Positions 11,170-60,500 of a stretch of 64,000 nt of DNA are shown piece after piece (the stretch's first letter is position 1; each line of letters begins with the position of its first letter). The translations under genes and the position numbers were made by a program. Where the stretch lies: contig OZ037766.1 in NCBI GenBank assembly GCA_964035545.1, forward strand, positions 24,792,126-24,856,125, read 5' to 3'. The notes below the pieces were generated by a model that saw nothing but the letters and a program-made list of their open reading frames with translations, was not told the DNA's origin and did no database searches. The DNA comes from Bugula neritina. Lineage: Eukaryota; Animalia; Bryozoa.

Positions 11170-14100
11170 ATGGAGAGTTTTTTAAACAGGCTGATGATGG
11201 TAAGTCAATATACTATCACAGAAAACTTTAAATGTCTTCATAATTCTAGGTAGCTGTAAGTAAACTGAAGTTATATATTTATAGCTTACTTGATTGAAAG
11301 AGATGTTAAAATTCTTAAGAAGCTAATTTATAAAACACAATAACTGCAATATTATATTATAAACTAACTTTTACTTCAAACATACTGGGAATTGCATGAT
11401 GTATTCTTAACTATTTACAAAGTTCACCAGCAGCTTAGCCCACAAATACTGCTGCTATATAGTTACTAATTTAATGCATCAAACTGAAACTCAGATTATG
11501 TTAGCATGACATAGTCTATAGTTATTTTAGTATTATATGTTTCTTTGTAACTCTAACTCATTTGTTTAGGCATGTGAATACTGCTGTATTTTAACACAAA
11601 ACTTGAAGAATCTAGTGATAGTTATTTATTTTATATGAATTACCTCTTCTATTCAACCATTAATTTGCAGATAAATCACTATATAAGTTTAATTCTACTG
11701 TAAAAATATAATCATCATTTGATGTCATTAATAAATAAAATTGTATTTGTGTTTCAGCTGATCTTGATGCTTGCCTGTTTAACAACTTCAGTTGCTCCAA
11801 CAAGTGCTGAAAACTCTTACATTGTTCGGTAAGTAAATTAAAATTCACACATACAAATACTATAGTCATGCCACTTCAGTTCAAAAAAATTCACTATATT
11901 CTGACATAATTTTGCTTAATTGGCCTTTAGGAAATATGTATTATTTTATACTAGTATTATGTAGGTTAGTATCCTTTTCAGCTGATTAGCAAATAACAAA
12001 TATTTTTAAATTTAAGATGATTTCATAATATTGTTTTCAATTGTGCCATTTAAGGGGAATTTATTAGGCGATAATAAAAACTTTGCTTACGTAGTTGTTC
12101 TACAAATAATGGTGTGATTGAAAATAGGATCTTGAGCTGCTCTATAAAAGCTTTACTCTGCTTTACATATTTATAAATCATCCTGAAGACTGCAAACAAA
12201 AATGTAATAATTAATTGAAGATCAATTGTGTAAGGAGTACAAAGCTACTATAATATAGTGTTGTTAGCATGTCTTATCAAAGATTCATTGTTTTATATAT
12301 TTGTATTTTTTATGTTATTAAAAATTGTAAGTGGGTTATTTTACTTTTTTTGCCACACATCATAAAATTATGAACATTACTTGCTCAGCAGAATTTATAG
12401 AAAGCTATTATATGGGGTGAGTTTATATGTGTTGATTCTAACTATACGTGTATATATATATATATATATATATATATATATATATATATATATATATATA
12501 TATATATATATATATATATATATATATATATATATATATATATATATATATATATATATATATATATATATATATATATATATATATATATACATATATT
12601 TATATATATATATATATACATATATTTATATATGTTTATAATTAAACCATCATGTTTCATGTATCCCATTTTACTAGAAAAACATAAAACATTAAGCAAA
12701 ATTAGAAACAAAACTTTGATTAGTTAGTTGTATATGTTAATGATTTTTTAGTTTAGGTCAAAAATCATGTACATACATTAGTAGCTAAGTTGCAAAAAAT
12801 AAGCAAAAGTTAGAGATAATGCATGAGTGTGTACTAAATTAAGTTATAAAATGCCTGAAGTTCAGTTAAAACTTGGTTTACCACATCGTTAAAGTTTAAA
12901 ATTTTACTTTCATAGAGAAAGAAAATGTTGATTAAACTACATATATGATCTCTGATGATAGAAACACAAAATATTGTAGTAATTTGCAGAGATTTCCTTT
13001 ATAGGCTAAATGGGTACAAGAAAGCTGAGGTGTACAGTACATCCACTTCCTATGTTTATTACATGGAAAAAGATGAGTACATAGCTGGGAACATACTCTT
13101 TATAGACAGTTATTCTCTGAGGACAACAAATGGTGTCTCAGTGTCTACCATAGCTGGATCACCAACATCTAGTGGGTATGGTACCAGTTCGGGAACAAGT
13201 GCTCGTTTTAGCAACATTTATGGATTTTACCAGAAAAACAGGACCCATGTCATAGTGGTAGATTATAGTTATTCATGTCTTCGAATGATTGACAGAACCA
13301 ATGGACATAATTCACAGTTTGCTGGAACATGTCGTTCATCTGGGTATAGAAATGGGAGAGTTGGCTACGCACAATTATATTATCCATACCAGATGTTGTT
13401 GGATAAAACTAGTCCAACCACTCTTATTGTTTCTCAAAACCTAGCATCTTCGTCATATGGTTATCTTAGATCAATTGACATTAATACTGGCTATGCTGGT
13501 GTTTTAGTGTCATCTGGTTTGAATTATCCTCGTGGTATGACATGGGATGAGAGTGAAAATGTACTTTATGTGACAAATTTGCATTATATTGCTAAAATAA
13601 CATGGAGCACCAAAAGTGTTCAAACTTTAACAGGTTCAACATCTTCTGGTAATATTGTTGGAAGTTTTAGTCAGTCACGGTTCAACAGTCTTACAGACAT
13701 TTTTTCAATGAATAAAGAAATAGTGGTAATTAATGAAAATGGTCAAAGTAAATTGAAAGCAATCAACATGGCATCTCAAATTTCTATGACTGTCGATATC
13801 TCTGGCTTTGACTCAGGTATCTATTCCGTTGCCCAGATTAATGGCAGCACTTATGTTGGTACTTCTGGAAAAATCTACAAACTGAGTGGTGAGTTTACCA
13901 ATGAAATAGCAGTAGAACCAAAATAGCAGCAGCTAATGCTTTTAACTTAATTAATAACTTATCCTGTGTAATCTACAATAGCTGTATATCTTTTATTATG
14001 TTATATAGTTTAGTGGTGGAAAAGCTTATCATTTATAGGCCTATATTATAAGATTTTAGCAATCTATACTGCTACCAGTTTAAAATATCAGTACAATTTT

Positions 14101-57520: not shown

Positions 57521-60500
57521 ATGGAGAGTTTTCTAAACAACCCGACATTGGTAAGAAATATTACTTGATTACAAGAAACATTATAGATGCCTTGCAAATA
57601 CCAACAATTGATGTTATATATATGCTATAAATAAACTGAAAGTGAGCATGTTTTATTTGAGTGATTTAATCAATTCATAATATAGTGTTGAGATGTGAAT
57701 TTTTAAAACATTAACTGCAATAATAAAAATTCTACCAGTTTAAATTCGTAATTAAAACTAGTGCAAATTATTTGGAAAATTTATCTGCAGCCTTAGCTAT
57801 TGCTATTGCTATTACTATTGCATTAGGTACCAGTTTATTGTTATGTAACTAAACCTCAGAATTAGTATTATTGCTATATGAAAAAGTTGTAATTACTTGG
57901 TTGTTCATCTCTTATACCACTACTCAGCTGCTTAAGCAATTACTGTATGGCTTTCTATAATTCTACACAAAAATCAGTTAATTAGGTTTAGAAGCTTGCT
58001 GACAATTTTTTAATACTTGTAATAATAGTCTAACATCATTTATTTCCATAACAATTAGGTATGCTTATACCACTTGAAGTTTTAGCTAAAGTTTATATTT
58101 GCTTTTAGTTGATCTTGATGCTTGCCTGTTTGACAACTTTAGTTGCTCCAACAAGTGCTGAAAACTCTTACATTGTTGGGTGAGTAAATTACACACACAC
58201 ACACACACACACACACACACACACACACACACACACACACACACACACACACACACACACACACACACACACACACACACACACACACACACACACACAC
58301 ACACACACACACACACACACACACACACACACACACACACACACACACACACACACACACACACACACACACACACACACACACACACACACACACACAC
58401 ACACACACACACACACACCACACACCACACACCACACACCACACACCACACACCACACACACACCACACACACACACACACACACACACACCACACACCA
58501 CACACACACACCACACACCACACACCACACACCACACACCACACACACACCACACACACACACACACACACACACACACACACACCACACACACACACAC
58601 ACACACACACACACACACCACACACACACCACACCACACCACACACACACACACACACACCACACCACACACACACACACACCACACGCAGTGCTGTTAT
58701 TGCTGAATAGAACTGCGATAGCCGCAAACAATTAAGCTACTGTAGCAGCTGCATTAAGATGTGGACCTATAAGGATCGAAGCTAATTAATTTATGACAGT
58801 TTGCCTGAAAATATTAGGTTTTTGAGACTTGCAGTAATTTATACTTTTAATTTATTGCCTACAGACTTTTATCAAGATCTTATAGTTGAAATGATGGATT
58901 ATAGTTGGAAGTGGTAGGCACAGATAATTACTTTCTTGTAGATTGAATGGCTACAAAACTTCTGAGGTGTACAGTACAACCACCACCAGAGTGTTTTACA
59001 TGGGAAAAGATGATTACATACCTGGAAACATACTCTTTACAGACCATTATTCCCTAAGGACAACAAATGGTATTTCTGTTTCTACCGTAGCTGGATCGCC
59101 AACATCTAGTGGCTATAGCCCTAGCTCAGGAACAAGTGGACGTTTCACCTATATATTTGGATTTTACCAGAAAAACACGACTCATGTTATAGTAGCAGAT
59201 TATGGTAATGCATGTCTTAGAATGATTGACAGAACCAATGGACATAATTCACAGTTTGCTGGAACCTGTCGTTCAGCTGGACATAGAAATGGGAGAGTTG
59301 GTTACGCACAATTATATAGACCATATCGAATGTTGGTCAAAAAAACAAATCCAACCACACTTATTCTTTCTCAAAATAAGCCATCTTCATCATATGCATA
59401 TCTTAGATCAATTGACATCAACACTGGTTATGCTGGAGTTTTAGTGTCATCAGGTTTAAATCAGCCATTCGGTATGACATGGGATGATAATGAAAACACA
59501 CTTTATGTGGCAAACCATCATTACATTGCTAAAATAACATGGAGCACAAAAAGTGTTCAAATTCTAGTAGGGTCAACATCGTCTGGTAGCAGTGTTGGAA
59601 GTTTTAGCCAGTCACGATTCAATGCACCTAAAGACATTTTGTTAATAGATCAACAACTAATAACAATCAATGAATGGAATCAAAGTAAATTAAAAGCAAT
59701 CAACCTAGCCTCACAGAATTCTATGAATGCAGATATTTCTGGCTTCAGATCTGGTATCACTTCGGTTGCCCAGATTAATGGCAGCTAGCACTTATGTTGG
59801 AACATCTGGAAAAATCTACAAACTGGGTGGTAAGTTTACTGATGCGATAGAGGTTGAGTTAAATTTCCTGTAACTTTTTCTAATTGCAGCAGCCATAGTG
59901 CCTTTTAATCCTATAATTAGAAAATTTTCTTGCGTGTAATCCACAGCTGTTTGTTGTAGTATGTTATACAGCTTAGTAATGGCTTGTTATAATAGCATGT
60001 TGTTATAATGCTAGCTGTAAAAGCTTGTTTTCTACAATATCTAGCAGGATATTGCTATGCAAAATTGTAAACTTCTATAATTGTTCCAATGAAGCATTAA
60101 TGATATGTTTGTTTCTGTGTACATAATTTTATATTGGTTAGACAATGATATTCTATTTTGAAACTGTAGGTAAAACCTCCAGCATTATACAATACCTGAA
60201 GTTGAGATCAAACCATACATCACATAATTTCTCATATTTTAGGAATGAATAAACAATGCTCTGTGAATGCTTCCTACTTGTCAGGAGAAACTGAAGTGAA
60301 ATTTGGTTTCAATACACAAATTTGCTCTAGCTACCTTGTCTACATTATTAGTAAGTTATGCCATATAATTATGTTCTATACTAATATCTTTATATGTGAA
60401 TAATTTAATTACGTTTTTTAATGAGAATCAAGTAGAGTTATATTTACAAAGATAAATAGCTATAATAACAAATATATAGATTAATTCCATAACAATTCAA

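Follow-up and report, generated by a model that had tools for sequence, protein, structure and literature searches.

A tandem array of predicted secreted NHL propellers with a variable top face in the bryozoan Bugula neritina

Here we examine a family of tandemly arrayed genes in the bryozoan Bugula neritina that are predicted to encode secreted beta-propellers of the NHL-repeat type, the loops of which vary between copies predominantly on a single face. Four copies of this seven-exon spliced gene, all on the plus strand, lie in a 64,000-nucleotide stretch of contig OZ037766.1 (assembly GCA_964035545.1, positions 24,792,126 to 24,856,125; hereafter the window, within which coordinates are counted from the first letter), and form part of a local array of 11 copies spanning 190 kb. 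An earlier note on the window had proposed that diversifying selection acts on a Tyr/His/Arg-rich binding surface attached to a constant domain, a design likened to that of immune or allorecognition receptors. The product of copy 1, of approximately 515 residues, comprises a signal-peptide-like start (exons 1 and 2), the 884-nt exon 3 and a tail of approximately 185 residues containing eight cysteines (exons 4 to 7).

11170..11199, plus strand: copy 1 exon 1, coding part (ATG and start of the signal peptide); from the sequence and a GT donor, the junction being taken from DNA alone
11758..11828, plus strand: copy 1 exon 2, hydrophobic signal-peptide exon; AG/GT ends, a hydrophobic stretch by eye and a homologous exon in copies 2-4
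13005..13888, plus strand: copy 1 exon 3, the entire six-bladed NHL propeller, 294 codons; AlphaFold2 predicted local distance difference test (pLDDT) 91.5, matches to NHLRC2/SOQ1, join to exon 4 in an RNA-type contig
14209..14316, plus strand: copy 1 exon 4, 35 codons, two Cys, variability equal to that of exon 3
14999..15145, plus strand: copy 1 exon 5, 48 codons, two Cys, the only exon to be nearly invariant, little diverged at silent sites; joined to exon 6 in an RNA contig
15480..15675, plus strand: copy 1 exon 6, 64 codons, two Cys, low silent divergence, ratio of nonsynonymous to synonymous differences (pN/pS) like that of exon 3; both joins in RNA contigs
16400..16511, plus strand: copy 1 exon 7, 36 codons and stop, two Cys, no transmembrane or anchor segment by eye
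26498..29952, plus strand: copy 2, exons 2 (26498-26571), 3 (26979-27859), 4 (28215-28322), 5 (28788-28934), 6 (29244-29439) and 7 (29838-29952)
37554..43478, plus strand: copy 3, ATG at the end of exon 1 (37554-37556), exons 2 (37871-37944), 3 (38554 to 39428), 4 (39768-39875), 5 (41278-41424), 6 (42005-42200) and 7 (from 43355)
57521..62019, plus strand: copy 4, exons 1 (57521-57550), 2 (58109-58179), 3 (58942-59829), 4 (60243-60350), 5 (60601-60747), 6 (61105-61299) and 7 (61908-62019)

Exons 1 and 2 encode approximately 34 residues with a hydrophobic core, called by eye as a signal peptide, and the product further carries the disulfide-type cysteine pairs and N-glycosylation sequons typical of secreted proteins. 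Inspection of exon 7 by eye revealed no transmembrane or anchor segment, the exon ending three residues past the last cysteine region; since the product thus appears to lack a membrane anchor, we favour a secreted binder over the receptor design of the earlier note. The full layout is matched by P0075, a natural transcript-derived relative of 520 residues, which was used as the whole-protein query in searches in which exons were otherwise queried singly. Furthermore, a contig from an RNA run contains the joins of exons 5-6 and 6-7 almost exactly at the predicted boundaries, and a contig from a probable RNA run contains the exon 3-4 join across a GT..AG intron; these contigs represent family members that are not necessarily copy 1, and they indicate the presence of transcripts rather than their level or tissue.

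The frame of copy 3 is open, with an exon 3 acceptor shifted by 9 nt in frame to 38554 and a stop codon four codons beyond that of the other copies. Copy 2 looks damaged, as the acceptor of its exon 6 reads TG instead of AG in this assembly, and its exon 1 was looked for and not found. Copy 4 is read as a pseudogene in this assembly, having two frameshifts: a 4-nt insertion at approximately 59783-59786, late in exon 3, that leads to a stop, and the loss of one base at the start of exon 6. Both frameshifts and the lost acceptor had escaped the earlier note. At window position 13084, copy 1 encodes Ala27 where all paralogues have proline; contigs from three runs all read C, and the alanine may represent an assembly error or a private change. 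Duplication of the copies as an assembly artefact was ruled out by their identity of 70-76% in protein and by the presence of relatives in independent samples.

Modelling and profile searches identify the exon 3 product as a six-bladed NHL-repeat beta-propeller, in agreement with the fold anticipated from the sequence. The AlphaFold2 model consists of six four-stranded blades (predicted TM-score, pTM, 0.90), the best structures found by Foldseek are NHLRC2 and SOQ1 (TM 0.66-0.77), and hmmsearch with an exon 3 profile returns NHLRC2 first at E 1e-22, with TRIM2/3/71 and Brat next; after NHLRC2 and SOQ1, sequence and structure matches are to teneurin-like and TRIM-NHL domains. PF01436 matches 18 of 33 family members at E<=0.05 (best 7.7e-6), the window copies taken alone lying under the Pfam cut-off. 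The top surface of such propellers is composed of the DA and BC loops (PMC3066209), and NHL domains bind RNA via this face (PMC8251876). We assigned faces from the strand list of the AlphaFold2 model together with the blade motifs, and defined the top face by a rule identical for each blade, namely the two positions preceding the Pro of F-x-x-P-x-G, the one following it and the three positions after strand B, giving 36 codons. The resulting patches of copy 1 are as follows, with exon 3 positions in brackets and posteriors from site model M8; the second clade is described below.

13048..13059, plus strand: DA loop of blade 1 (15-18); M8 posterior 0.99 at 16; not in the earlier note
13108..13116, plus strand: BC loop of blade 1 (35-37); posterior 1.0 at 35
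13210..13221, plus strand: DA loop of blade 2 (69-72); posterior 0.89 at 69
13264..13272, plus strand: BC loop of blade 2 (87-89); posterior 0.64 at 88, and 1.0 at matching sites of the second clade
13378..13389, plus strand: DA loop of blade 3 (125-128); posteriors 0.93 at 125 and 1.0 at 126
13438..13446, plus strand: BC loop of blade 3 (145-147); posterior 0.98 at 147; not in the earlier note
13522..13533, plus strand: DA loop of blade 4 (173-176); posterior 0.985 at 176
13579..13587, plus strand: BC loop of blade 4 (192-194); posterior 1.0 at 192
13684..13695, plus strand: DA loop of blade 5 (227-230); variable, and selected in the second clade
13738..13746, plus strand: BC loop of blade 5 (245-247); posterior 0.95 at 245, and 0.99 with 22 sequences
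13813..13872, plus strand: both loops of blade 6 (270-273 and 287-289); posterior 0.63 at 287, and selected in the second clade

The eight variable patches previously reported for copies 1-4 are exact and all fall on DA or BC loops (D-SY/RY/MH/HY-S; RF-SNIY/GYLF/NYLH/TYIF-G; D-YSYS/YYNS/NDNA/YGNA-C; L-YYPYQ/VRPFH/FNPYQ/YRPYR-M; LN-YPR/HPK/YPR/QPF-G; N-LH/RY/RY/HH-Y; FN-SLTD/SLTN/SLQD/APKD; NE-NG/G/WS/WN-Q), and the constancy of the flanking strands was likewise recovered, four flanking motifs being identical in all four copies. Patches at 15-16, 145-147, 270-273 and 287 add to these eight, completing a full ring of twelve loops. Across the 11 local copies, the 36 top-face positions carry 4.3 residue states per position, compared with 1.9-2.1 in strands, bottom loops and other loops (Mann-Whitney p 2e-12), and none of 293 circular shifts of the position set reaches the observed value; variation is therefore clustered on the top face rather than scattered. 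The proportion of nonsynonymous differences (pN) is 0.42 at top-face codons versus 0.12-0.15 elsewhere, and the fixed-site dN/dS (omega) is 1.42 versus 0.26-0.32, with bottom-face and other loops at pN/pS 0.4-0.5. In composition the face is rich in tyrosine (21% vs 5% elsewhere) and histidine (6% vs 1%), whereas arginine, also named in the original description, is barely raised (8% vs 5%). The invariant columns are glycine, proline, cysteine, tryptophan and scaffold residues, and no invariant polar residue was found among the top-face positions.

Codon site models for the 11 copies detect positive selection in exon 3, where twice the log-likelihood difference (2dlnL) is 42.4 for M1a/M2a (4.6% of sites at omega 4.0), 58.5 for M7/M8 and 41.8 for M8a/M8 (7% of sites, omega 3.0); for exons 4-7, concatenated for rate estimates in a codon alignment from which insertions in frameshifted copies had been removed, 2dlnL is 0-3 and not significant. 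Eight of the ten sites with an M8 posterior above 0.9 are on the top face (Fisher p 9e-7), the other two, 179 and 233, being equivalent strand A positions of blades 4 and 5 that line the central channel. Because the copies recombine, null data sets were simulated, and the 2dlnL of 33.5 obtained with nine non-redundant copies exceeds all 44 recombination nulls (maximum 23.7). A bootstrap interval above 1 for the top-face pN/pS was set aside, as a simulated neutral face averages 1.2-1.3. Between copy 1 and copy F, a recent pair, top pN is 0.18 versus a silent divergence of 0.095, with introns at 0.04-0.08.

The second clade, comprising nine genes on contig C7 that are approximately 35% identical to the window copies, was tested through its exon 3 as an out-of-sample set and repeats the one-face pattern decisively. 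Here 2dlnL reaches 242, with 8% of sites at omega 11.7; of the 22 selected sites, 20 are on the top (Fisher p 6e-19), and the top pN/pS of 3.6 compares with a null maximum of 1.83; per-site variability is correlated between the two clades (rho 0.32, p 8e-8). The original proposal predicted sites at which dN/dS exceeds 1, and exon 3 yields them in both the local array, where the evidence is moderate, and the C7 clade.

The tail does not behave as the constant half of such a design. Among the four window copies, the share of variable columns is 43% for exon 3 and 40% for exon 4, falls to 12% for exon 5, and is 25% and 30% for exons 6 and 7, respectively, such that the near invariance claimed for the C-terminal exons applies to exon 5 only. 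The selective difference suggested between exon 3 and exons 4-7 is present insofar as the positively selected class of the local copies is confined to exon 3, but the remainder of the propeller is as constrained as the tail: pN/pS is 0.43 for exons 4-7, no different from 0.48 for the non-top propeller (exons 5 and 7 alone give 0.29, with wide intervals). Against distant paralogues exon 5 is 26-39% identical, and exons 5 and 6 range over 20-40%, like the propeller. The design is that of a uniformly conserved protein with one variable face, rather than of variable and constant domains joined together. Attempts to identify the tail through Pfam, two homologue searches, ESM Atlas features, the PDB by sequence and an Atlas fold search returned nothing usable, and a single-sequence model is of low confidence (pLDDT 36.6; strand-helix-strand-helix-strand order), with weak Atlas matches only.

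The similarity of exons 5 and 6 extends to silent sites, with a proportion of synonymous differences (pS) of 0.166 (confidence interval 0.124-0.209) compared with 0.286 in exon 3 and 0.389 in exons 4 and 7, and four-fold sites agree (0.14-0.15 in exons 5-6 vs 0.27). Exon 3, exons 5-6 and exon 7 mutually reject each other's trees in approximately unbiased (AU) tests, with p<0.002 in both directions for exons 5-6. The low silent divergence and separate tree of exons 5-6 indicate gene conversion, which would be confined to well-matching exons, although selection on silent sites is also possible; these exons would then look constant because tracts have been exchanged between copies. Conversion alone had been raised earlier as a competing account of C-terminal constancy, and while the silent sites of exons 5-6 agree with it, intron ends are mostly just 54-60% alike between copies and so have not been homogenised. 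Exon 3 is itself recombinant (p 0.004 in an incompatibility test). A clear tract exchange is seen in upstream copies C and D, which have a distinct second half of exon 6 in common (100% bootstrap) yet do not group in exon 3.

Introns served to place 11 JGI sequences obtained from two samples, the flanking introns being 87-96% identical to particular copies of this assembly. Ten of the 11 have a counterpart, among copies B, C, D, E and 3 or in the copy-1/F group, and one is without a partner; five are copy-1-like (from the two samples), compared with two such genes in this assembly. They may represent alleles, extra copies or sibling-species orthologues, and the samples themselves may be pools or sibling species. 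Top pN in orthologue-like pairs is 0.04-0.08 for D, E and B and 0.13-0.36 for the others. In several pairs exon 3 is more divergent at silent sites (0.13-0.24) than is the next intron (0.04-0.08), a pattern that the import of paralogue tracts into exons would produce.

A number of points weigh against diversifying selection as the explanation of the top face. Three of the six orthologue-like pairs (D, E and B, at the top pN of 0.04-0.08 given above) show little top-face change, and therefore not every locus is racing. The top-face rule was set after the local data had been seen, leaving the C7 clade alone as out of sample, and the site models were run in purpose-written code with empirical-Bayes posteriors rather than in PAML. 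Extreme recombination (mosaic) nulls for 11 sequences come as high as 41.6, with 42.4 observed; the tree-free ratio of 1.52 (top pN over exon pS) is upward-biased (neutral null mean 1.2-1.3; p 0.01-0.07); and some top codons differ at two or three bases, such that multi-base mutation could add to the signal. The local array alone consequently provides moderate evidence for omega above 1. Subject to these caveats, we find the top face to be under diversifying selection, with the scaffold and tail under similar purifying selection.

At least 133 exon 3 matches occur across the genome, and because profile searches with exons 5 and 6 score at 82 and 92 places, respectively, the majority of them on contigs C2 and C7, we estimate that about 80-90 genes share the full layout. 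Together with broken and partial copies, among them upstream copies E and G of the array, these many paralogues point to birth-and-death turnover, as expected of a germline-diversified repertoire. An orphan exon 6-exon 6-exon 7 relic lies between copies E and F (contig C2 24738854-24740065, L044), and upstream copies A and B (L031, L032, L041, L047) have intact exons 3-7, exons 1-2 not being found by blastn or a signal-exon scan. Within the window, the 3' flank of copy 3 (43689-45152) is present a second time at 53204-54615 (85% alike, also resembling the flank of copy 2); this second stretch has no exon 7 ahead of it and is possibly a remnant of a lost gene. The two clades differ by a 17-residue segment before blade 2 (exon 3 positions ~52-68), present in the window clade and absent from the C7 clade, and by a Cys-bridged loop before blade 6, present in the C7 clade and absent from the window clade. 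Approximately 30 remoter NHL exons (20-29% identity) are located on contig C8 at 7.6-8.0 Mb and 8.7 Mb; none matches the exon 5 or 6 tail profiles, and we regard this cluster as a different family.

Mobile elements are interspersed with the copies. A Ty3/Gypsy-type long terminal repeat (LTR) retrotransposon on the minus strand at 45035-50057, between copies 3 and 4, contains gag-like, protease, reverse transcriptase, RNase H and integrase regions and is broken by stops and frame changes, with more fragments at 1-2500 and 51940-53200. An element at 32446-34683 has 118-bp inverted ends (97% alike) around minus-strand open reading frames which by eye resemble a Penelope-type reverse transcriptase and a GIY-YIG endonuclease, a Pfam search giving no match. 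A 740-bp element, probably a solo LTR, occurs at 42350-43089 (intron 6 of copy 3) and 2826-3564, the two being 94% alike.

Among known propellers, the NHLRC2/SOQ1/teneurin type provides the best sequence and structure matches and shares the six blades and the F-x-x-P-x-G and D-x-x-N motifs. Those proteins are conserved, low-copy and fused to thioredoxin-like or YD-shell domains, whereas here a signal peptide precedes the propeller, an eight-Cys tail follows it, copies number approximately 80-90 and one face is hypervariable; no Pfam match to a thioredoxin-like domain was obtained in P0075 or exons 4-7. TRIM-NHL proteins (Brat, TRIM2/3/71) share the fold, and bind through their top surface (PMC8251876). 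They are, however, cytoplasmic RING/B-box ligases, unlike the Bugula family, in which no RING, B-box or coiled-coil N-terminus was found, exons 1-2 and the P0075 layout providing a signal-peptide start instead. By eye, exon 4 resembles the end of a HYR domain and exons 5-7 the cysteine spacing of the module that follows it in SVEP1/Uninflatable-type regions (between HYR or Sushi and Ephrin_rec_like repeats); this resemblance was not confirmed by Pfam, and the exon profiles find no match in an SVEP1-like gene with HYR, HYR, Sushi and three Ephrin_rec_like domains (L062, contig C2 23961689-23967736, minus strand) that lies approximately 10 kb from two NHL family members.

Large diversified families of secreted recognition proteins are known in invertebrates, including snail FREPs, bivalve C1qDC proteins, sea-urchin SpTransformer and TLRs, and amphioxus VCBP; these are tandem families characterized by birth-and-death evolution, gene conversion and positive selection on the binding surface, while tachylectins and tectonins demonstrate that secreted propellers can act as pattern-recognition lectins. 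Positive selection in the Bugula family is likewise concentrated on the putative binding surface, at moderate strength in the local array alone, but the binding domain is NHL, and none of the domains of those families has a Pfam or PDB match here. The evolutionary pattern is thus a known one, while neither the scaffold nor the secreted layout nor the phylum appears to have been described in this context: a literature search, with most subscription journals outside its coverage, found no description of this secreted NHL family or of a bryozoan NHL expansion.

We propose, with a probability of roughly 0.62, that these genes encode soluble secreted NHL binders with a diversifying top face, forming a germline recognition repertoire of 80-90 genes that acts outside cells. 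Each paralogue would present a different Tyr/His-rich top face and so bind a different extracellular ligand, the tail probably serving a shared role such as oligomerisation or docking (a guess). The array would evolve by birth and death with exchange of exon tracts, the repertoire being renewed through duplication, point mutation under selection and transfer of tracts between copies. Changing non-self partners, such as microbes, parasites or foulers, would be the most economical driver, and surface molecules of these organisms would be the most likely targets, with about even odds for this class; an immune or allorecognition role for the secreted propellers is putative.

An unlikely alternative is that the top face co-evolves with a polymorphic partner of the same species in self/non-self recognition, as in colony fusion, larval kin recognition or sperm-egg compatibility. 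Bryozoans are colonial, strongly divergent versions occur at apparently the same loci in other samples (introns 87-96%, top pN up to 0.36), and the five copy-1-like variants span two samples; furthermore, Hydractinia Alr and Botryllus fuhc-region genes also combine a colonial animal, a tandem cluster, a hypervariable extracellular surface and exchange between paralogues. However, the Bugula family has no Ig domains, no transmembrane segment and no fusion phenotype mapped to it, and the Hydractinia Alr1/Alr2 and Botryllus fester proteins, by contrast, are membrane proteins. Its diversity is mostly among 80-90 dispersed paralogues rather than at one or two loci, and allelism is only putative where samples may be pools or sibling species. 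A shade less likely is that these are secreted proteins of enzymatic, structural, adhesive or feeding function whose substrate preference has diversified: enzymes are known among NHL-like propellers, the signal peptide, cysteine pairs and sequons suit any secreted protein, and variable residues 179 and 233 line the central channel, but the invariant scaffold-type columns offer no catalytic candidate on the top face, and no enzyme family appears in Pfam or among the best PDB matches. Least probable is relaxed constraint only, in which neutral drift of exposed top loops among redundant duplicates would account for the variation, and recombination for inflated test values: the borderline local tree-free result against omega = 1, the recombinant exon 3 (p 0.004) and the decay of several copies would fit, but bottom-face and other loops are equally exposed yet remain at pN/pS 0.4-0.5, the top is rich in Tyr and His rather than typical loop residues, and the C7 values (ratio 3.6, 2dlnL 242) lie far beyond the nulls, which strongly disfavours drift for the family.

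The 36 top-face positions provide a direct list for mutagenesis and population tests. More tentatively, Bugula may possess an extracellular immune or self-recognition repertoire of 80-90 secreted NHL binders, in which gene conversion at the exon level reshuffles top faces that differ from colony to colony; such a repertoire could help to decide which bacteria are tolerated, including the bryostatin-producing symbiont. Should these binders recognise non-self, the NHL propeller, mainly known as a conserved intracellular binder of RNA or protein, would have been reused as a variable extracellular scaffold, and the family would offer a first molecular entry point to the study of immunity, kin recognition or symbiont choice in bryozoans, a colonial phylum.

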